In this document: piece by piece, positions 47,983-62,639 of the stretch
How the letters are laid out: each line of letters begins with the position of its first letter
How positions within the stretch are numbered: position 1 is the stretch's first letter
Assembly: GCF_000315625.1 (NCBI RefSeq)
Contig: NW_005434644.1
Location: 54,775 to 118,774 of the forward strand
Origin: Guillardia theta CCMP2712
Taxonomy: Eukaryota; Protista; Cryptophyta
Reading direction: 5' to 3'
DNA: 64,000 bases
Program-made: the position numbers and the translations under genes
The notes under the pieces: generated by a model
Database searches by the model: none
Seen by the model: the letters and a program-made list of their open reading frames with translations, nothing else
What the model was told of the DNA's origin: nothing

Positions 47983-48184
47983 GTACTTTTGCCGCGCCAA
48001 CTCAGTTCCGTTGCGCGGCCCGCCGGGCAGCAGTGACTGGGGCCCGTCGGCCGGGCGGCCGGGCGGCGCGCCGGCGAGCAGCGGCCGGGCCGCCATCCGA
48101 TCACGTAGGGTCGTCCGAAGTTGGTTTACAGAAGAGTTTTGTGACTCTGTAATACAGTCAGGTCTTTACTCAAAGTTAAGTTAA

Positions 48185-48674
48185 TGTAAGAACTCAGGTT
48201 CTGACAAACCTCTCAGAAGTTCTTTCAGACGCGATAAGTTCAAGGGATGCGTCTAATCAGGTTGTGAACCATGTGAAGCCTGCAGGTCCAAGCTAGTGGG
48301 CTGGAGCTTAGTCTGTGACTTAGAAGATCCGGTTGGTTGGAGCCTGGGGAAGCTGAGGCGGCGCCGGAGGAATCAAGAGGCGCCGGCTGTCGAAGAGGCA
48401 GCACTCGTACAGTGGTGGAAGTAAGGCGGTGGTGTGTGAAGGGAAGCTGTTTGGTTGGTCTTGCTGCTACGAGTGTTGGGAATAAAGTGCTGGGGATTGT
48501 TGGGAAGTTGATCTGAGTTATCTGAGGTGTTTGGTTGGCTGTGAAAGTCATTGGTGTCTTCGTGCGCACATCATCTGTGAGTCTTGGTCTTTGGACTTAT
48601 CAGTCAGCTGTTGAGCTGTTCTACTAGTCATTCATCTGTGCACAGACTCTAGGAGTCAGGAATTGATTCCAATA
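48185..48674 (+). repeat. 5' LTR (TGTAAG...CCAATA)
   Basis: Matches 56828-57317 with one mismatch seen (CCATGT vs CCAAGT). Confidence 0.95.
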
Positions 48675-48724
48675 CAAAAAGAAAATTTTCTTTTTGTATC
48701 CACGAACAAAGGAATACAAAAAGA
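48672..48724 (+). promoter_or_regulatory. Perfect 28-bp palindrome at the PBS position, plus an alternative pairing arm
   Basis: 48672-48699 ATACAAAAAGAAAATTTTCTTTTTGTAT is its own reverse complement. GGAATACAAAAAGA at 48711-48724 repeats the left arm. Function is inferred. Confidence 0.7.
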
Positions 48725-48864
48725 CTCTACGATAACATTCCAAGGACAACGAGTTTAAGGGCTCTTGGTCTTTGTGCGTCGAATTGACAACGAGTTTGAA
48801 GGCTCTTTAAGTTATACTGTACGCTGTTACTCATTTTTTTTGGAACGGTATTGGTAACTCCAAG

Positions 48865-51800
48865 TTGACGATCATGAGCATGAGCATGCCAGATCTGCAA
48901 GAGGAGTTGAAACGAAGCCATGGTGATGTTCAGGTCGACAAGCTGAAGCATGGGAAGGTTACCTCCAAGGAAAAACTCGAGGACCTGTTCCTTCCTTTCT
49001 CAGGTGCCATGAGTCGTTTTCGTCCGAATCTTGGGGCTTGTTTCTTAAAACTGTTGGACTTGTTTCCGATTGACGAGACTGGATCGTTTGTTGGAGAATT
49101 TCATGAAATGTGGGAGTCGTCTCCAGAAGGTCTAGAAAAATTCTCTTCGCTGGAGTGGAAGATTCAGGTCACGGCGTTGTTTCTGCATGCTGGGTACATT
49201 TGGAAGAATGGGAAGAAATTCAAGGATGCTCTTGAGAAGTTTAAGAAGTTGCGAGGAAAATTCGAGGAGGCAATCGCAGCCAGCGAGGATGTGAATGATG
49301 GTGCTTCAGAGGATGGAGAGATGGGTAATCCACTCGATACATCTGTGGTTTTCTCTCCACACAAGTACCAAATATCACCGAGGTTGTTCAGATCCTCAGC
49401 TGATCGACAGGAGGTGGAAGTCTTATTTGAGGATATTGCTGAGGTACTTGTCAGCACGAACAGTTATTTTCGAGTTAAGCTAAAGGATGATTTCGACATA
49501 GAGTGGCAGATGTCAGGAGGAGGCAACTATCCTTTGGCATTCTTCAAAACTTTGGCACTGGTACGCTGGAATGTAAAGCAACGAAGTGGAGCTGAGCTTA
49601 TCGAGCTTACTGAGGACGAAGGGAGAGATCAGCTCAGAGCGCTAGCGAAACAGCCACTTGAGTCTGAAGAAGCCTTCTGGAGGAACGTGGACAAAATCAA
49701 GCTACTGTTTAAGAATCTCAAGGATAGTATTCAAGGTGTTGTGGGGGCACACCAAAGGATGGGGCCGTTAGAGATCCAGATCGCTGAACTCTTGCATGCC
49801 AGGTGTAAAGAATCGACTTGTGAATCGTTGCAGTCATTGGCATTGAATAGAGAATTGCGAAATTGGAAGAAGAGTAATATGAGACCAGAAAAGATTTCTC
49901 TCGACGAAATATTCCACTGGGGGCGCATCTTAAAAACTAGAAGCAAGACGACTACGACCGTGACGCCCGCGATGGATGCGAAGGGAGACGTGTCAGTGGT
50001 GAATATCACTGTGGCAAGTGAACCGTTGGTACCGAATGAACCGCAGGCTGTCGGAGAAGTTGCAGTGGGCAAGAAGAGATCCTCGGGGTCAGGCGAAAAC
50101 AGTGGTCAAGCGGATTCGGGAGAGAATTCTCACGTCGATCCCAAATGGTATGGTAATTACCCAGTTCGTGGGAGTATACCTCCATCATATCCTCAAGGTA
50201 TCATGTTTCCCAGCCAAGACCCGTTTTTCAATTTCTATGCTCAAGGTCAACCCTCTATGTATCCATTTCCTATCCAAGGTCCGGTCGGGAACGTCCCAAC
50301 GTTTTACCAGGCTTCTGGTCAAGCTCCTTCAGGACCTGGTAGGACGGGACAAGATCAGGCGGCGTTTGACCCTAGCTCATACCGTGGTGGTTTCCCTGGC
50401 CGCGGAGGCGAGGGGGACGGCGGACCTAACCATACGGGTTACCGTGGCAGGGGAAGGAGGAATCAGGATGGGTACCATAATGGAGGGAGAGGAAGTTTTA
50501 AAGGAGGCTATGGAAGAGGTCAGGGTGGACAGAAAGGACATGGAGGCAAAGGTTGGAAGGGTGGTCGAGGTCATGGAAATTTCAATCACAACCACAACTA
50601 CAATAACAACAACTACAATCAAAATAATGGCAACTACAAAAATCAGCGGTTTAACCCTCGAGGGGTTGAAAGTGAACAACCGTCATCTGTCTTGCAGAAT
50701 TTGTTGTCAGGGGGAGTTGTGGACGCTGAAACCACGCGCAAGATGGGGGAAGCGTTGATTCAGGCAGCTCAACGCATGGCAGCGAATGCTTCTTCAAGTT
50801 CACACAGTCACCAGCAGAAGGCTGACGCAGACGGCCAGCGGAATGAGTCAGAAAAGAAATCTTCTGTTCCTGCAAATCCATTTGAACGCTCATCGGCCCA
50901 GAATGCAACGGAATCTGCATCACAGGCTAATCGAAGGCAAGGAGCGTGGAAAGCAAATTTCACATTTGGTCTCGACTCCACGTCTACCATCGAGGAATTG
51001 CAGGAAATTGCATTGCAGGTAAAGGAGAAAGAAGGAGCTGGAGGCCATACGTTCTTGCTGGACTCTGGTGCTAATATCTCCATGGTCAAGGAAGAGTCTA
51101 TGTTGTTTGATGTCCAAGCTGGACCTGAATTTCAGGTGCTTACCGCTGGAGGTACTGTCGTCTGTGATAAGGTTGGAAAATTACGACTGCAACTGGTTTG
51201 TCCAACAACTAACACATGTCTGGACGAGATTATTGTCAACGTTCGCGTATGCCCGCTTGTCCCGATATCGTTGCTTAGCTTGGATGATGTTCTTGGGACT
51301 GACTACCACATGTTATCACGGGGCTCCAGGAGTGCCCTAAAGTCTTACATTTGCTCAGAAGATGGTGCATTGAAAATCGATGTATTCCAACGAGATAGGT
51401 TGTACTTTTTGCAGACGGTTTTCATGGGAGATGGGAAGATTAGTGTGGCGTGCAACAGTACAACCTCTTGCGCTGGTACGAGCAATGGTGATAATTACAG
51501 TGGGGGTCCATCAAGTTTAGTGACTCTCAAGCCAGAGGAGAACATGTGTGAGCAGTCCCGATTGTCAGCTGCGACAGAATCGGCCATCTGGCACCTTCGG
51601 CTCGGACATCTGGAAGCAAAGATTCAAAAATTACTAGCCGATTCGGTGAAGTATGTCACGTACGACAGGCGCCTAAAGAAATCTCCTTGTCACACCTGTA
51701 GAATAGCAAAGTTCGTCTCACGGCCGATCCATCGACAGTCGGATTTCCGACAGGAGCGGGCATCAGAGGTCAATCAAGTCTGGCATATGGATTTGAAAGA

Positions 51801-54800
51801 CGTAATTGTACAATCCGAGCCTGGTGGTTATAGATATTTCTTGATCATTGTGGACGTCTTTTCGGGATTTGTGCGAGTAAGACCTATGCGCACGAAAAGT
51901 CAGACGACTGCTATCCTCAAGGAAATACTGTTACAAGAGGATCGTGACAGCTCTCGTCCTAAGGTACAGAAGATTGTATCTGACAACGGTTCAGAATTCA
52001 GCTCTGTGGAGCTGGAGAGCTTTTTCGTTGATCATGGGATACGACATGACAAAATTCCAGAGTACTCTCAGGTCTACAATGCGTTCGCTGAACGTGGAAT
52101 CAGAAGCGTAATGTCCATTCATCGGACGTTACTACGTCAGAGCGGAGTACCCCGGAGCAAATGGGAATATTCCGTACAGCAGGCAGTTTTACTGTACAAC
52201 ATTCTGCCTAGTGGACGAAATCTAGGGTATTCCTCACCATACTTGATATATACAACAGAGCAGTTTGACTATCGCAAGCTCAAGGTTTTTGGGTGCAGCA
52301 CCTTCTTCAAGAATGAACTACGCACGTCAAAGGTGGATGATCCAGCAATTCATGGTTTAAATCTGGGAAACGCGTGCGCTTTCTCTGGATATAAGGTGGG
52401 GTATTTGGTTTGGGATATCGAGCATGATAGAATCGTCCATACGAATAATCTTACGTTTGACGAGATGTATTTTCCATTACGTTGCCGACGTTTTCAGGCA
52501 TCTAATGTGGAGGATGAATTGTTGAAGGAACTAGTACCTTGTGCACCAGTGGCATCTGACGACGACGAAGACTCCTCGGAAAATGCGAGTGAAACAGAAT
52601 TGCAAATTCCTGAGGAAGTTGCAACGTCTGGCAGGAAGCGACACTGTCAGGGAGGCTCTGGTCCTGACGCAAGTGAAGTTTCCGCGAGCAAGCGCCTCCA
52701 ATTGGAATTTCCACCTTCCTCGGTCCAAGGCCTAACATCTGGAGATCAACGGGAGGATACAGGAGAGCATCGGTTGAGGGATGATACCGAATATGTGCCT
52801 GACGGTGCAATGTCTCCAGTTCCTCCAGCAGGCAGAAGAACACGGAGGGATTTCAAGGCGGAGCGAGGGGTCTTGGAAAGCAAATATGTCAATCGAGATG
52901 TCGAAGTTCTTGTAAATGGTCAAGTAGAGCAAGGCAAAATTTTGCAGATGGTTTTCAAGGAGGGAAAGTTTCTCGCGCGGATTGTTTTCCCAACTCTCGA
53001 CAATTACTGGGTGTTACGGTCTGTCACTGATCCTGACATCAAGTTTTTGGAACAAACCGAACAGAAGGCAATGGTGGTGCTTACAAGTGGGGAGACAATA
53101 TCAGAGGTCTGCATGTTAGCAGATTATTACTCGTGCAGCTTTCCACCGAACGTCTTTGGTGATATGACCGACCATACCAAGGTTTTTAAACCCTGTCTTG
53201 ATCGTGCAGCGGATGAGATCAAGGATGTTGTCGAAGCTACAGTTGGGGGTTCGCCTGAAGTGGTTGTACTTTCCCAGCACAAGAAATTTCCACAGTATCT
53301 GCAAGTTACACATATTGTGCAGGGGTCGACTGAATCTGAAGAGATCTTGTATGTTTGGGACAGGGGGGAAGACAGGACAAGCCTTCAGCCAGCATCCCAG
53401 CGTTTTGTTCCAGTATGGAGGGATGAGATGTACAAAACTCGTTTACAGCATGTCGATCCTGTGTCATCTGCCCCACAGGTCAGTGCTAATGTGGACCCTA
53501 CTTTCAGGGATACGCGTCTTCTTGTGGCGAATCTAGCGTTGGTCTCTCCCGTATGGGACGCGGTGGAGCTGGCGTCTGACCTGTTATCTCTGATGTCTTC
53601 CGACCGTGACAATCCAGCTGCAATGCCTGAGAATCAGGCAGATTACGCGATGACAGCGGCTTGCGATGCAGGAGATGTGGAGAACGAAAGTAGTTTTGAC
53701 AAGTTACCAGATCCCAAGACAAGGTCAGAGATGTTACGTCGCCCGGATCGGCATCTTTGGGAGCAGGCTGAAAAGGAGGAAATTGCGAAGATCGAAAGTC
53801 GTGGGGTCTGGGAAGTTGTTACGCGTGATCAGAAAAACAGGGAGTCAAATCATTCTGTACTTGCTCGCGCCTTGTGGGTGTATGCTTCAAAACGAGACTT
53901 GAAGGGCAAGATCTTGAAACGAAAGGGGCGGCTAGTTATCATGGGCAACTTACTTCCTTCATCTGAAGAATTGTTTGCACCGACTACATCGTTGGACAAT
54001 ATCCGGCTCTTGCTGAGCATCGCGGCAGGCAACCGTTGGAGAATCACATTCAGGGATATCTCTGCTGCTTTCTTGTATGGTGACTTGGAGGTTCCTGTGT
54101 ATTTGATTCCTCCAGATATCATGAGTCTTCCTCCTGAGTGCCTCCTCAAAGTCTTGAAGTCGCTCTATGGACTTCGCATTGCACCAAGGAGATGGTATCT
54201 TAAGTTCACGCAGGTGTTGAAGACGGTGGGAGCAAGTGGGATAGGACATGATGAGATCATCTACCGATACTCCAACTGTGCGGGGGACGTCTTGCTTCTG
54301 ACTGTCTTCGTGGATGACTTACTCATTGTCTCTCAAACTGAAGCAGTTAAGATTGAGTTTCTTGAGAAGCTCAACACAGTATTCGACTTTTCGGGGAGTG
54401 AGGCAACAGGTACCTTCTTGGGCATTAAAATAGAACAGAATGACGATCAGGGTCGGATAACTTTGTCACAACAGCATTTCATTGAAAAGATTGTTGAACG
54501 CTTTGAAATCGTTGCCAGAGGTGTCAAAACGGTATTACCTGGTCACTATCTCAAGACTTATCACTTGGAGGGTAAGTTGTTGAACAAGAAGGAAGTCCGC
54601 ACTTATCAGAGTCTTCTGGGGTCCATTCTCTACGTGGCAAATTGTACGCGGGTTGATATCGCATTCGCGACGAGCGTCCTTAGTCGCTTTGCTCGGGCTC
54701 CTAGGCAGTGCGATATGGATGCCTTAATTCATCTTCTACAGTACCTTTACACTACTCGGGAGGTTCAGATCGTATACCATTGTCACGGAGTATCTTACCA

Positions 54801-55305
54801 CCAGGAGTGTTTTGTCAATGAGATGATTGCATTCAGTGATGCTGGTTGGGGTACCGAGATTATTACGAGACGGAGTCAAAGCGGATATGGAATCGTTCTG
54901 AATGGTGGGGTAGTCGTCTTCGGTTCAAAAATGCAGAAGGTTGTTGCCCTGAGTTCTTCAGAAGCTGAAATTTATGCTGCCACCACCTGCGCGAAACTAG
55001 TCAAGCTTTATAGAAATCTCTTGGGTCAGATGGGATTTACGCAGACTCGTCCTACTCTCTTGCTAATCGACAATGAACCATGTCTGAGGCTTTTGTGGGA
55101 CAAGCGAAGTTATAGTCGACTCAAACACATTGATATTCGAACGAAGTATGCTGTTGATTTGGTAGAAAAGGACGAGCTCTATCCAGAAAAGATTCATACT
55201 TCTTATCAGCCTGGTGATTTGCTGACGAAAGTTCTGCCTTTGAATCGGTGGAGGCTCCTTGGTGAATTTCTCTTCGGAGACCCCTTACCGGATATGCTGC
55301 TCTGA
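48865..55305 (+). CDS. Copia Gag-Pol polyprotein (2146 aa, uninterrupted; first ATG ~48874)
   Basis: Protease FLLDSGAN; integrase HHCC (WHLRLGH...CHTC) and DDE (WHMDL, SDNGSEF, AERGIRS); RT DISAAFLYG, KSLYGLRIAPRRW, FVDD; RNase H FSDAGWG...SSSEAEIYA...DN...KHIDIR. Confidence 0.97.
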   Translation: MTIMSMSMPDLQEELKRSHGDVQVDKLKHGKVTSKEKLEDLFLPFSGAMSRFRPNLGACFLKLLDLFPIDETGSFVGEFHEMWESSPEGLEKFSSLEWKIQVTALFLHAGYIWKNGKKFKDALEKFKKLRGKFEEAIAASEDVNDGASEDGEMGNPLDTSVVFSPHKYQISPRLFRSSADRQEVEVLFEDIAEVLVSTNSYFRVKLKDDFDIEWQMSGGGNYPLAFFKTLALVRWNVKQRSGAELIELTEDEGRDQLRALAKQPLESEEAFWRNVDKIKLLFKNLKDSIQGVVGAHQRMGPLEIQIAELLHARCKESTCESLQSLALNRELRNWKKSNMRPEKISLDEIFHWGRILKTRSKTTTTVTPAMDAKGDVSVVNITVASEPLVPNEPQAVGEVAVGKKRSSGSGENSGQADSGENSHVDPKWYGNYPVRGSIPPSYPQGIMFPSQDPFFNFYAQGQPSMYPFPIQGPVGNVPTFYQASGQAPSGPGRTGQDQAAFDPSSYRGGFPGRGGEGDGGPNHTGYRGRGRRNQDGYHNGGRGSFKGGYGRGQGGQKGHGGKGWKGGRGHGNFNHNHNYNNNNYNQNNGNYKNQRFNPRGVESEQPSSVLQNLLSGGVVDAETTRKMGEALIQAAQRMAANASSSSHSHQQKADADGQRNESEKKSSVPANPFERSSAQNATESASQANRRQGAWKANFTFGLDSTSTIEELQEIALQVKEKEGAGGHTFLLDSGANISMVKEESMLFDVQAGPEFQVLTAGGTVVCDKVGKLRLQLVCPTTNTCLDEIIVNVRVCPLVPISLLSLDDVLGTDYHMLSRGSRSALKSYICSEDGALKIDVFQRDRLYFLQTVFMGDGKISVACNSTTSCAGTSNGDNYSGGPSSLVTLKPEENMCEQSRLSAATESAIWHLRLGHLEAKIQKLLADSVKYVTYDRRLKKSPCHTCRIAKFVSRPIHRQSDFRQERASEVNQVWHMDLKDVIVQSEPGGYRYFLIIVDVFSGFVRVRPMRTKSQTTAILKEILLQEDRDSSRPKVQKIVSDNGSEFSSVELESFFVDHGIRHDKIPEYSQVYNAFAERGIRSVMSIHRTLLRQSGVPRSKWEYSVQQAVLLYNILPSGRNLGYSSPYLIYTTEQFDYRKLKVFGCSTFFKNELRTSKVDDPAIHGLNLGNACAFSGYKVGYLVWDIEHDRIVHTNNLTFDEMYFPLRCRRFQASNVEDELLKELVPCAPVASDDDEDSSENASETELQIPEEVATSGRKRHCQGGSGPDASEVSASKRLQLEFPPSSVQGLTSGDQREDTGEHRLRDDTEYVPDGAMSPVPPAGRRTRRDFKAERGVLESKYVNRDVEVLVNGQVEQGKILQMVFKEGKFLARIVFPTLDNYWVLRSVTDPDIKFLEQTEQKAMVVLTSGETISEVCMLADYYSCSFPPNVFGDMTDHTKVFKPCLDRAADEIKDVVEATVGGSPEVVVLSQHKKFPQYLQVTHIVQGSTESEEILYVWDRGEDRTSLQPASQRFVPVWRDEMYKTRLQHVDPVSSAPQVSANVDPTFRDTRLLVANLALVSPVWDAVELASDLLSLMSSDRDNPAAMPENQADYAMTAACDAGDVENESSFDKLPDPKTRSEMLRRPDRHLWEQAEKEEIAKIESRGVWEVVTRDQKNRESNHSVLARALWVYASKRDLKGKILKRKGRLVIMGNLLPSSEELFAPTTSLDNIRLLLSIAAGNRWRITFRDISAAFLYGDLEVPVYLIPPDIMSLPPECLLKVLKSLYGLRIAPRRWYLKFTQVLKTVGASGIGHDEIIYRYSNCAGDVLLLTVFVDDLLIVSQTEAVKIEFLEKLNTVFDFSGSEATGTFLGIKIEQNDDQGRITLSQQHFIEKIVERFEIVARGVKTVLPGHYLKTYHLEGKLLNKKEVRTYQSLLGSILYVANCTRVDIAFATSVLSRFARAPRQCDMDALIHLLQYLYTTREVQIVYHCHGVSYHQECFVNEMIAFSDAGWGTEIITRRSQSGYGIVLNGGVVVFGSKMQKVVALSSSEAEIYAATTCAKLVKLYRNLLGQMGFTQTRPTLLLIDNEPCLRLLWDKRSYSRLKHIDIRTKYAVDLVEKDELYPEKIHTSYQPGDLLTKVLPLNRWRLLGEFLFGDPLPDMLL

Positions 55306-56817
55306 GGATGCTCGCCTGTCATGCTCTCTGCGCTTCTGTCAGGGACAGTGCTACTCTGTTCCCATGCCGTCAGTCGCCAAAGTTGTATGCCCCGTGTGTG
55401 ATTGACGGTGATCCGAGCTCCAGTCTCCGACAAGGAGATTCAACCGATCCTGCTGCGGTGGCTTCCAGGCTTTATCTTCCGTCTTTTCTCCGATTCAGGG
55501 AGGGTGTCTCGGACCCTTGCCACCGAGTCCGTGTCGCTCGAGAATTGTCAGTCTTCCGTCTTCTATCCGATTCAGGGAGGGTGTCTCGGGTGATGTCACC
55601 GAGGAGACTCTCATGGAGAACGTGAAGGAATCGGATGAATCGGAAGGAGGATAAAGACAGACACGTCTTCCTCAAGCCTGTGGCTAGCTGCAACCAAGAC
55701 ATCTGTTCTAGGTTAGTATCTTAGAAACTCGCTCATCCTGATCTATGGAACCCATGACGGTAGTGAACGATGAAATTGAATGGCCAAAAAAAAAAAAAAT
55801 GAAAATTGAGAAAGAAATGACGGATGAGTCGAGATCGATAAGTCATGTGGTTGAAATGAAAGCGCTGACGTCAAAAATGATTGTGCCTTGGCAAAACAAT
55901 GATCCCCGGGGTAGATAGGATAGAAAGGGCCCATAGATTAGAAACGAGAAAATTGTGTTCAAAACAATCAGAGATCAATCAATGCATTGCAAGAATTCTG
56001 AACCTGATCTCTGGAGCTTGATTGGAATTCTAAATTCTTGGCATCATCAATGGGTGGAGATGTCTTCATTGCTCAATGCGCAAGCTTCAGAGAGGTCACA
56101 TGATGACCAATCCCATCATGAGGATCAGGTTGAAGAGGAGGAGGAGCTGTCTGACTTGAAAGATGCAGATGTGTTCAGGACTTAGTCTTGAACTGACACT
56201 GCAGGCAGCTGGGAAGAGTTTATGATGGAAGGTGAGGAGGAGCACAGGTGCATGCGGACAGCGCAGGCGGATGAGGAGCGTCTCTGTGGCATGCGGATGG
56301 TACAAGCTGAGGAACCCGTGTGCACGAGCCTCAGGATGCGCTAGAGGAGGACAGCGCAGGTGCTGCAGGAGTGCTGCTGAAGCGCAAGCGCTGGAGGAGC
56401 AGCGCAGGCCCTACGATGGTGGGGAGAAGCCGCAGCGGTGCACTGTTGGCGGGGTGCGACTGCACTGCATCCGCAGCGCAAGCGGAGGAGGAGCGCAGGT
56501 GTCACAGGAGGAGAAACGCAGGTGCACCAGGGTGCACACTTGAAGCGAAGGAGGAGCGCAGGAGGCATGCAAGATGGGGGATGAGCCTGTGCAGAACGGT
56601 TGATGGAGTGGTAGCAGCAAGATGACCTTGGAGAGGAGAGCAGCATGGAAGTCAGCTTGGGAAAGATGTTGATGGTCAGGTGATGGGAGCAGCTGACAAC
56701 GCTGCAAGAAGCTAGAGCGAGCGTTGGAAAGGAGGACATCGCAGGGGACAGCTGCTTAGCTGTCAAGCAGATGATTTTGACAAGCTGAGAAGGTTGCAGC
56801 CTTCTGACTTGCTTCCC

Positions 56818-56827
56818 AAAGGGAGGG
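56818..56827 (+). other. Polypurine tract AAAGGGAGGG
   Basis: Immediately 5' of the 3' LTR. Confidence 0.85.
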
Positions 56828-57317
56828 TGTAAGAACTCAGGTTCTGACAAACCTCTCAGAAGTTCTTTCAGACGCGATAAGTTCAAGGGATGCGTCTAAT
56901 CAGGTTGTGAACCAAGTGAAGCCTGCAGGTCCAAGCTAGTGGGCTGGAGCTTAGTCTGTGACTTAGAAGATCCGGTTGGTTGGAGCCTGGGGAAGCTGAG
57001 GCGGCGCCGGAGGAATCAAGAGGCGCCGGCTGTCGAAGAGGCAGCACTCGTACAGTGGTGGAAGTAAGGCGGTGGTGTGTGAAGGGAAGCTGTTTGGTTG
57101 GTCTTGCTGCTACGAGTGTTGGGAATAAAGTGCTGGGGATTGTTGGGAAGTTGATCTGAGTTATCTGAGGTGTTTGGTTGGCTGTGAAAGTCATTGGTGT
57201 CTTCGTGCGCACATCATCTGTGAGTCTTGGTCTTTGGACTTATCAGTCAGCTGTTGAGCTGTTCTACTAGTCATTCATCTGTGCACAGACTCTAGGAGTC
57301 AGGAATTGATTCCAATA
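56828..57317 (+). repeat. 3' LTR
   Basis: Near-identical to 48185-48674. Confidence 0.95.
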
Positions 57318-57840
57318 GTTAAAATCACTGACTCAGTATCGGAGGACAATCAGGAGAGTCAAGGAGGCTTGACCCTGACACTGTCGCACAGGCCAAACGG
57401 CGAGAAGAGAAAGACAGCGAGAACCAAACCCAATCCTGCCGACTGCTGCCCCCCACTGCCAGACGGTGCGCACTGGACAAACAGTCACCGGGTGTGACCC
57501 CGGCGTTTGAGTTTTGTGCGAGCATGTTCAGTCAGTGCCAAGTTCGGAGCCGGGCCCCGCAGTGACGGTGCCATGATCATCCGACATGATAGCCCGTCCC
57601 GGCCGGCCCGGAGTCGGGCCCGGCGGCCCCGAGCCGACTCGCATTGAATGCCCCGGTGCCGCAGGCAGGATCAGATCGGACCATCATGGGCCGAGCGGCA
57701 CTCAGTTGACTTGCCAGTTGAACTGGCGGGCCGGACTCGGGAGCCTCGGGGGCACTGGCAGGCTGCGTGTCGGACTCGGGCGCGGCGGGAGTCGGAACTC
57801 GGAACTTAAACTTCGGACAGTGACTCGGAAGTTCGCAAGA

Positions 57841-60652: not shown

Positions 60653-60871
60653 AGGTGAGGAGAGGGAAGAAGGTTTGATCTGAGAAGTGAGTATATCAAT
60701 TGAAGTTTTTGTGAATTTTGACCCATGAGCGTCTGGTTAGTCCATCAGCCACGCATGCGGTGGTTGTCCCTGCCCTCCTGACAGCATAACTTCACATGTG
60801 ATCACCGCCAGCGCGCCACACTCCTCCCCCCTCCCCCCCGTCCGGATCATTCCCCTCCTGTTCCTCCTTCT

Positions 60872-61037
<166 letters not shown>

Positions 61038-62071
61038 ACTCTCTATTTCCCGCTTCCTCCTCCTCCTCCTGCTCATTCTCATTCTCACCGCGAGCATTTG
61101 ACAACACGTGTTGCGCTGCCAGCTTCACACTGAACGAGGTTCGAGGGTCTGCAATTTTGGCCTGGAGTAAGGAAGATGAGATGGAGATTGGCAGAGAAAG
61201 AGAAGATGAGAAGAGAACGAGAGGGACAAGGAGGAGAAGCAGAGAGGGCGAGAGAGAGGGAGAGGGAGGGGGNNNNNNNNNNNNNNNNNNNNNNNNNNNN
61301 NNNNNNNNNNNNNNNNNNNNNNNNNNNNNNNNNNNNNNNNNNNNNNNNNNNNNNNNNNNNNNNNNNNNNNNNGGTATCGAGGTCGGGGGAGAGGGGGTTG
61401 GGAAGGAGTTTACATTGAGGGGCGTGATATCGACTGCTGCTTCATTGATAGCAAGTCGTGACATGAACCTGGGCAGACTTTGAGCCAGACAAGCAAAAGA
61501 AAACCAAATGAGAAGCAGATGGAAGAGGAAAGGATCGAAATGGAAAAACAATCGAGTACAAAATGAGATTGAAGAGGCAACTTGGTTGCGATACTTGAAA
61601 TGCAGATGTCGTCAGAGCATGACAAAGAGCAGAAGCAGGAGCATAGCAATAGAAGCAGGAGCAGGAGCAGGAGCAGGAGGAGCAGGAGGAGCAGGAGGAG
61701 CAGGAGGAGGAGAAACAGAGAGGAAGATCAGCACGAACCTGCATGCCAGAAGCTGGATGAAGGCGTCCGGCCGGGAGAGAAAGGGAAAAGTAGCCTCCAC
61801 CAGCCTCCTAGGCCAACAAGAGAGACGAGGAGGAGGTCAGAGAGAAAAGAAGAGGAGAAACCGAAGGATCTCGGAGGATCTCGGAGGATCTTGGAGGATC
61901 TTGAAGGATGGAAGCGGATCAATAAGAAAGAGGAGAGGATGCTGGAAGGATGTTGAGTGAACAAGGGATGGTGGTGGTTGATGTGATGCCGTTGGTACAT
62001 GAGCAGAAGCAGAAGTAGGAGCTGGAGCTGGAGCTGGAGCTGGAGCTGGAGCTGGAGCTGGAGCTGGAGCT

Positions 62072-62135
<64 letters not shown>

Positions 62136-62145
62136 AAGAAGCAGC

Positions 62146-62183
<38 letters not shown>

Positions 62184-62189
62184 AAGAAG

Positions 62190-62225
<36 letters not shown>

Positions 62226-62639
62226 GAGGAGAAGCTCTCACGGGTCATCTCTCTTCAGCTCGCCTCGCTCTGCCCTCAGACTGCATGTCAAAGTCACTCT
62301 TGCTCGTGTCTCTGCTGGGCTCTTCCACACCTCAGCTTTCTCAGCTCGTCCTTGAGCTGAGAGTCATTGAGCTGCTCCCACCCTCTGATCTCCCCCAGCA
62401 GCTTCTCCTGCTCAAAGTTTTCCTGCTCCACTCGCCAAGCCATCCTGCATTTGCAGCTTTCAGCGGCTTTGCCGGCAACCCCGCCCAATACCTCCTCTCC
62501 CTCCTCCTCTCCCTCCTCCTCTCCCTCCTCCTCTCCCTCCTCCTCTCCCTCCTCCTCTCCCTCCTCCTCGCCTCTTTCTCATGCTCTCATCCTCTCCTAT
62601 TCTGCGCCACCTGTCCACTCTTGTCTCGTTGAGCCTCCG

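Follow-up and report, generated by a model that had tools for sequence, protein, structure and literature searches.

In the retroviral scheme of reverse transcription the minus strand is copied from the primer site through U5 and R. Drosophila copia and yeast Ty5, which like the element described below belong to the Copia superfamily and lack a TGG site, are primed by a half-tRNA, their site being complementary to the anticodon arm of tRNA-iMet. For an LTR element to start reverse transcription without any tRNA, one mechanism is known, that of Tf1. Self-priming of this type is ascribed to Tf1, Tf2, Maggy, Skippy, Cft-1 and Boty (Lin and Levin, 1997, as relayed by PMC5445492 and PMC6934838). 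According to these accounts Tf1 uses its own RNA, cleaved by an element enzyme, in place of a tRNA, much as we propose below for the present element; in Tf1, however, it is the 5'-most 11 nt of the transcript that anneal to the primer-binding site, whereas here the complement lies immediately downstream. Moreover, Tf1 is a Ty3/gypsy element with a non-palindromic site, while the present element is a Copia element with a palindromic one.

Fungal GalEa elements, also of the Copia type, have no primer-binding site and carry instead a 'Conserved Hairpin Site' (Donnart et al., 2017, BMC Genomics 18:410, PMC5445492). Its first part, CHSeq1, is CTGATCAGT or CTAATTAGT and is palindromic when the final A of the LTR is included; its second part, CHSeq2, is ACAGATCAG and lies 2–41 bp downstream of CHSeq1 (PMC5445492). 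The authors found that the hairpin site fits no known model and proposed that it replaces the primer-binding site (PMC5445492); it has been without an explanation since 2017. A later mention of the hairpin site comes from work on bivalve TRIMs, whose inner domain holds inverted repeats of 9 bp with one mismatch and which lack a conventional primer-binding site (PMC6934838). These are non-autonomous miniature animal elements, and a long palindrome at the LTR boundary is not reported for them.

Self-complementary leader sequences also drive genome dimerisation in retroviruses and Ty1 (discussed in PMC5445492; see also PMC6844567). The retroviral DIS and the Ty1 PAL resemble the leader described here, as its predicted pairings have it, in that they are self-complementary, can pair two genomic RNAs and allow alternative leader conformations, but their palindrome sits in a hairpin loop beside a tRNA site, whereas here the palindrome occupies the primer site.

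Here we analyze a Copia element of a cryptophyte alga, Guillardia theta, that carries a long palindrome at the end of its 5' LTR. The original prediction for this locus held that its priming mode would be undescribed; in that respect it was preceded by the GalEa hairpin-site elements of 2017 (PMC5445492).

Anatomy and recent activity of the element

The window (the whole 64-kb stretch of DNA that was analyzed, C30:54775-118774, to which all coordinates refer) contains an element with the following features, all on the + strand:

48180–48184, +: left copy of the target-site duplication, GTTAA, repeated at 57318–57322
48185–57317, +: intact Ty1/copia element, 9.1 kb, defined by LTRs, target duplication and domains
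48185–48674, +: 5' LTR, 490 bp, TGTAAG...CCAATA (TG...TA ends), from alignment with the 3' LTR
48481–48506, +: AATAAA signal (48481–48486) and poly(A) addition at about 48506, from RNA reads
48652–48670, +: predicted hairpin (7 bp) in the last part of U5, immediately 5' of the palindrome, from the minimum-energy fold
48672–48685, +: left palindrome arm, made up of the final 3 LTR bases and CAAAAAGAAAA, at the expected position of the primer-binding site
48686–48699, +: right arm of the palindrome, TTTTCTTTTTGTAT, candidate primer and the only complement to the left arm that was found
48711–48724, +: third segment, GGAATACAAAAAGA, repeating the U5/left-arm junction; counterpart of the fungal CHSeq2
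48865–55305, +: single gag-pol open frame, 2146 aa, first ATG at 48874
56818–56827, +: polypurine tract AAAGGGAGGG, abutting the 3' LTR
56828–57317, +: 3' LTR, 490 bp
57318–57322, +: right copy of the target-site duplication, GTTAA

The LTRs, the 5-bp duplication, the polypurine tract and the domain order PR-IN-RT-RNase H make this a Ty1/copia element, in line with its earlier assignment. Specifically, the polyprotein of this family, which we call family A, runs from the protease (LDSGA at about aa 733) through the integrase (HHCC motif at aa 910–945, rve match at aa 967–1065) to the reverse transcriptase (RVT_2 match with an E-value of 5.5e-35 at aa 1669–1884, FVDD) and RNase H. When aligned, the two LTRs of the window element show a single mismatch in 490 positions. 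The LTR terminus ...CCAATA is backed by perfect 5-bp duplications in seven matched LTR pairs, the window element's own among them, and in three solo LTRs, and ...agggaggg precedes each 3' LTR of the family.

Compared with the usual Copia polyprotein, this one has about 700 aa more. Its gag part has a long low-complexity stretch rich in G, R, N and Y (region of aa 400–700) and no zinc knuckle, and the roughly 400 aa between integrase and reverse transcriptase (aa 1230–1660) are without a Pfam match. A Pfam search of aa 1–720 and 1230–1660 returned no domain and hence no extra nuclease candidate; in the polyprotein as a whole, the domain search recognized no nuclease other than RNase H. About 1.5 kb from the stop codon to the polypurine tract (55306–56817) hold no convincing open frame, and a metagenome relative (contig L051) has a long 3' untranslated region too. 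Trinucleotide arrays lie downstream of the element at 60837–61049 and 61962–62249 (ATC/GTC, then GAG/CAG, with 6-nt and 12-nt periods).

Family A comprises about 12 copies plus solo LTRs in the genome, and its LTR pairs differ at 0–3 of 490 positions. Its LTRs are also transcribed, as follows from sense reads over the LTR that bear poly(A): in the raw RNA-seq run X22, six reads have a poly(A) stretch that begins after 48506, 20 nt past the AATAAA, which places the R/U5 border there and makes U5 approximately 48507–48674. Sense-strand coverage is confined to 48191–48518, as expected of a 3'-biased library; the leader has no reads, so this run has no bearing on cleavage. Young as well as transcribed, the element was thus rightly described as recently active. 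A contig break at 48699 (run X9) was considered as an RNA cut and rejected, since a C/T polymorphism at 48700 explains it.

For three pairs of loci (L005/L018, L007/L017 and L003/L026) the 5' and 3' LTRs with matching duplications sit on different contigs and the LTRs on the same contig mismatch, which suggests either that the assembly was joined across the repeat or that copies have recombined. Insertions of the family often adjoin very GC-rich repeats of the CCGGGCC or GGCCGGGC type (window positions 48000–48110; L018, L020, L021, L024, L027, L029 and L030), which suggests a target preference or a common repeat landscape.

A palindrome across the LTR boundary

The last 3 bases of the 5' LTR and the next 25 internal bases, ATACAAAAAGAAAA followed directly by TTTTCTTTTTGTAT, form a perfect 28-nt palindrome at 48672–48699. 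The original prediction had read this palindrome from the sequence, and the LTR limit that it spans is now fixed by the target duplications. It is followed by CC (48700–48701), a 9-nt spacer and the third segment. No other palindrome with arms of at least 9 nt occurs in the 64-kb window, and in 148 kb of other loci the palindromes with arms of at least 10 nt are the leaders of the sister families described below plus three unrelated GC-rich ones. The palindrome is exact in 12 genomic copies, while one further copy has two changes.

In that copy (L011, G000:C137:137065-140469), which has identical LTRs and reads ...GAAATTTTTTTTTTTG, one change lies at the center and the other turns a G:C pair into G:U. 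The variant may have arisen through a mistake of the reverse transcriptase at the primer site.

Two mutually exclusive stems had been proposed for the leader, and the predicted folds contain both. With RNAfold the palindrome hairpin is the minimum-energy structure (z = −3.9; none of 200 shuffles was as good). If the left arm is blocked, the right arm plus CC is predicted to pair instead with 48711–48724, giving 13 bp with one bulged A. The two are nearly isoenergetic by prediction, at −12.0 kcal/mol for the alternative stem versus −13.8 kcal/mol for the hairpin. Two leaders are predicted to be more stable by about 11 kcal/mol as a dimer than as separate monomers.

Sister families keep both stems with different letters

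A protein search of the genome with the reverse transcriptase region found two sister families, and their LTRs and target duplications were defined on representatives:

Family B: RT identity to family A 63%; LTR end ...GATTA, then CAAAGAGAAAATTTTCTCTTTG, then T; duplication CTCCC
Family C: RT identity to family A 47–50%; LTR end ...CAACA, then TATTCTAAAA-A-TTTTAGAATA, then T; target duplications ATAAA, TAGAC and GTCCC in three copies

In both families the palindrome begins with the final A of the LTR and closes with the T. It has 24 nt in family B, where the left arm holds CAAAGAGAAAA, and 23 nt in family C, whose letters are unrelated to those of family A. The counterpart in family A is ATA at the LTR end, C...G, and a closing TAT; in all three families the LTR end is fixed by target duplications.

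From A to B there is one compensated double change (A:T to G:C on both arms) and from A to C there are six, with zero broken pairs in either comparison; because all three families come from one genome and copies of the same family share about 95% identity or more, these amount to few independent comparisons. Pairs were counted by a script from the center outward, MAFFT having set family C one column out of register. The central AAAATTTT is the sole part of the palindrome common to A, B and C.

The second stem is maintained as well. Downstream of the palindrome, each family carries a complement to its right arm in which the family's own junction of U5 and left arm recurs (exact complement of 11, 10 and 9 nt in A, B and C, respectively). 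Matches as good were reached by 15 (A), 0 (B) and 60 (C) of 20000 shuffles each of the downstream sequence. The loop to this segment measures 9 nt in A, about 60 nt in B and 8 nt in C. The alternative stem is the predicted minimum-energy pairing in B and C, and the core of its helix, with the bulged A in family A, has no mismatch in B and C. In all three, the predicted helix has a bulge or loop within about 3 nt of the palindrome end, a feature that deserves little weight. The compensatory changes that the original prediction proposed to look for are therefore present in both stems.

In two family C copies (G000:C84:302538 and C85:347526) the pattern match lies on the strand opposite to the element, which implies that the unpaired center base is T and not A, with intact arms.

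A relative from outside the genome is the metagenome contig L051, whose polyprotein is 92% identical to that of family A; its palindrome is unchanged and its third segment is present twice. As had been expected of active relatives, families B and C and this contig are all palindromic, and neither sister family has a TGG site. Could the palindrome be due to chance or to an assembly artefact? Twelve copies on different contigs carry it, it recurs in the independent metagenome contig and in contigs of other sequencing runs, and two sister families have versions of their own, so that the probability of this explanation is negligible.

The joint changes in the two arms bear on another possibility, that the palindrome acts as double-stranded DNA, being a symmetric site for a dimeric protein such as a transcription factor, a silencing factor or the integrase. 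Symmetric DNA sites, too, change both halves jointly, and the palindrome lies in the transcribed leader, near the promoter-bearing LTR. Between A and C, however, the sequence is almost wholly replaced and the symmetry alone kept; the conserved third segment fits RNA pairing and not a DNA site, and the exact register with the LTR end would be left unexplained. We regard a DNA site as very improbable.

Candidate primers other than the element's own RNA

Neither a TGG site nor an anticodon-arm site of the GGTTATGAG type follows the 5' LTR in family A, and for all three families the post-LTR sequence led us to reject a primer site for a tRNA 3' end or anticodon arm, as had been claimed for the window element. 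The other early claim, that the LTR lacks a Tf1-type segment, holds equally: in A, B and C the 30 nt that follow the LTR have no complement of at least 8 nt within it. This rules out Tf1-type priming on the strength of a scan of the whole LTR for complements.

The general scheme also constrains where a primer can bind. The 3' LTR receives a copy of the stretch from R to the primer site, and it ends in ...ATA, so synthesis starts at the LTR boundary. It follows by logic that a primer site farther downstream is excluded, and we infer that the primer must pair with the left arm.

A search of the 87-Mb assembly (669 contigs) for the right-arm 14-mer returned the 12 element copies and nothing else, with matches on both strands owing to its palindromic sequence, and thus no nuclear gene offers a long complement. 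This search was made with a 14-mer in the nuclear assembly; complements of 10–11 nt and the RNAs of organelles and nucleomorph fall outside it. The 13-mer of family C has a few extra genomic matches, near the count for the control pattern. In line with the expectation that the host has no matching RNA, no 14-nt complement outside the element copies is present in the nuclear assembly. Of 1940 tRNA candidates 63 were scored, and none of these overlaps a pattern match.

More distant families of the same genome have sites of their own. Families D and E, at about 30% RT identity, carry GGTTATGAGCCTCG directly after the LTR. This matches a candidate anticodon-arm 17-mer, CGAGG-CTCATAA-CCTCG, in which a perfect stem of 5 bp closes a 7-nt loop containing CAT and which is present at four genomic places (none for the control), and so D and E appear to prime with the anticodon arm of tRNA-Met. 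A Copia element of Morchella has GGTTATGAGCCC at the primer site, of the same tRNA-Met anticodon-arm type. The site used by copia and Ty5 is thus represented in D/E and in the Morchella element and is absent from A, B and C. Two other family E copies have GGTTATAAAAGCCTCG in place of GGTTATGAGCCTCG, and at one locus (L047/L037, G000:C4:1217000-1240000) a family C element with the duplication ATAAA is nested in a family E 3' LTR.

Searches of 5.8 and 15 billion proteins indicate a small clade, consisting of A, B, C, their environmental relatives and one more lineage (P0127, 40% identity), seen as a protein. The relatives of family C from the metagenome and representative searches (L052 and L055) are on contigs that begin inside gag, without the leader. 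Outside the clade the closest proteins reach no more than 35% identity, and the nearest of these with DNA, a 35%-identity relative from another genome, has TGGTAGCG... after its LTR. Since this relative and the distant families have sites of their own, the palindrome is best seen as a derived replacement of the tRNA site in one clade.

Unusual primers elsewhere in Copia, such as those of D/E and Morchella, lend some plausibility to the idea that some host RNA primes on the left arm without using the 3' end of a tRNA, with small RNAs, fragments of tRNAs and RNAs of the organelles or the nucleomorph as candidates, and that the palindromy serves some other purpose. The complement searches used 14 nt (13 nt in family C), and tRNA scoring covered 63 of 1940 candidates, which leaves room for such a primer. 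On the other hand, the left arms of A/B and of C are unrelated and would need different host RNAs, yet all are palindromic, and the complement to the 14-mer of family A was found solely in element copies. The primer would also have to contain an 11-nt run of U and C, which to our knowledge is not expected in cytosolic tRNAs. A host RNA primer is therefore quite unlikely.

Comparison with the fungal hairpin site

Set beside GalEa by its design and its protein motifs, the palindromic leader is, as far as sequence comparison can tell, a variant of the hairpin-site design. Both groups belong to Copia, duplicate 5 bp of target sequence, have a single open frame and lack a site complementary to a tRNA. 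In both, a palindrome directly after the 5' LTR takes in the LTR's final A, as it does here in A, B and C, and a complementary segment downstream is a near copy of that A plus the palindrome start, with a small irregularity.

The differences are also clear. The GalEa palindrome has 10 nt (the final A plus CTGATCAGT or CTAATTAGT) and is nearly invariant, whereas those described here have 23–28 nt, can fold by themselves, vary between families and bear no resemblance to CHSeq1 in their letters. The interval to the downstream segment is 2–41 nt in GalEa; families A (9 nt) and C (8 nt) fall within this range, but family B (about 60 nt) lies beyond it. GalEa has a strictly conserved A/A mismatch with CHSeq2, which is absent here, where family A has a bulged A. 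At the protein level GalEa shows QTDD, CQPEA, KSRLVI and a C2C4C4H gag motif, in contrast to the generic Copia motifs FVDD, TRVDI and KGRLVI, without a zinc knuckle, in the present families. GalEa elements are about 6 kb long and fungal; the present one has 9.1 kb and a polyprotein that is much larger, with 2146 aa, and comes from a cryptophyte alga. Finally, the LTRs of families A and B are TG...TA and not the canonical TG...CA, which is found in family C.

A model for self-priming

The sole complement to the left arm that was found is the element's own right arm, which favors self-priming. Our preferred explanation is therefore that the palindrome is a primer-binding site of the 'conserved hairpin site' type which complements itself and needs no tRNA, and on which the RNA of the element primes its own reverse transcription, and we would put the probability of this reading, drawn from sequence and predicted folds, at roughly one half.

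The steps could be as follows. An endonuclease would cut the RNA at or close to the palindrome's 3' end and so give the right arm a 3'-OH. The right arm would pair with a left arm, either of the same RNA (fold-back) or of a second, co-packaged genomic RNA (a palindrome-to-palindrome duplex), and the primer would be extended through U5 and R. The third segment would compete for the right arm, and the alternative hairpin could either mask the primer or present the cut site. The original prediction had likewise envisaged a primer from a fold-back or an intermolecular duplex, with cleavage at the LTR boundary, and an alternative stem that could switch the RNA between translation and dimerisation or priming; all of these are proposals. 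Strong-stop DNA would then start opposite 48671–48674 and be joined to ...UUUUCUUUUUG(UAU) of the element's own leader. HIV-1 RNase H is known to leave a ribo-A; with the final A of the LTR inside the palindrome, one may speculate that the last primer nucleotide pairs with this A and is kept or copied.

The same structures can be read differently, as a signal for dimerisation, packaging or translation control, with priming achieved in some other way, for example by de novo initiation or by a protein primer at the hairpin base. Self-complementary leaders drive dimerisation in retroviruses and Ty1, the predicted dimer of leaders is favored, and the central AAAATTTT is common to all three families, all of which fits such a role. 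However, in retroviruses and Ty1 the dimerisation site is additional to a primer-binding site, and none is left here; nor does a dimerisation signal need to abut or overlap the exact point of initiation, as the palindrome does in A, B and C. We know of no LTR element with protein or de novo priming. On balance we find this reading unlikely, though less so than the host RNA and DNA-site explanations.

Within the self-priming reading, a cut 3' of the right arm would sever the genome, so that a second, intact RNA would presumably be needed as template. On theoretical grounds we set aside a cis fold-back in which the cut RNA is also the sole template: minus-strand synthesis would stop short of the palindrome, which could then not be regenerated. 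The downstream copy as a rescue of the second jump in cis was rejected too, since it works only by deleting the right arm. The fungal palindromes, with their 10 nt, are unable to fold back, which argues that a pure cis hairpin is not the general mechanism. Together with the predicted gain of about 11 kcal/mol on dimer formation, this makes trans priming at least as likely as cis fold-back.

A possible scheme, which we advance tentatively and with some doubt, is self-priming in trans that depends on a dimer: the leaders of two RNAs would pair, one RNA would be cut at the 3' edge of its palindrome, and its 5' fragment would prime on the partner, with the alternative stem marking the site. Such a scheme could also explain the fungal GalEa hairpin site.

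Implications

The hairpin-site design exists beyond fungi. Pipelines for LTR annotation that demand a tRNA site will misjudge such elements. Here the elements are young, intact and transcribed in an alga that can be cultured, so that the question of priming becomes testable. GalEa sequences are almost invariant, and structure is therefore inseparable from sequence there; the three families described here keep the architecture while swapping the letters, which argues for selection on self-complementarity at the LTR boundary. If trans self-priming is correct, this mode would have arisen in the cryptophyte Copia clade, and its likeness to GalEa would be due either to convergence or to old common descent.
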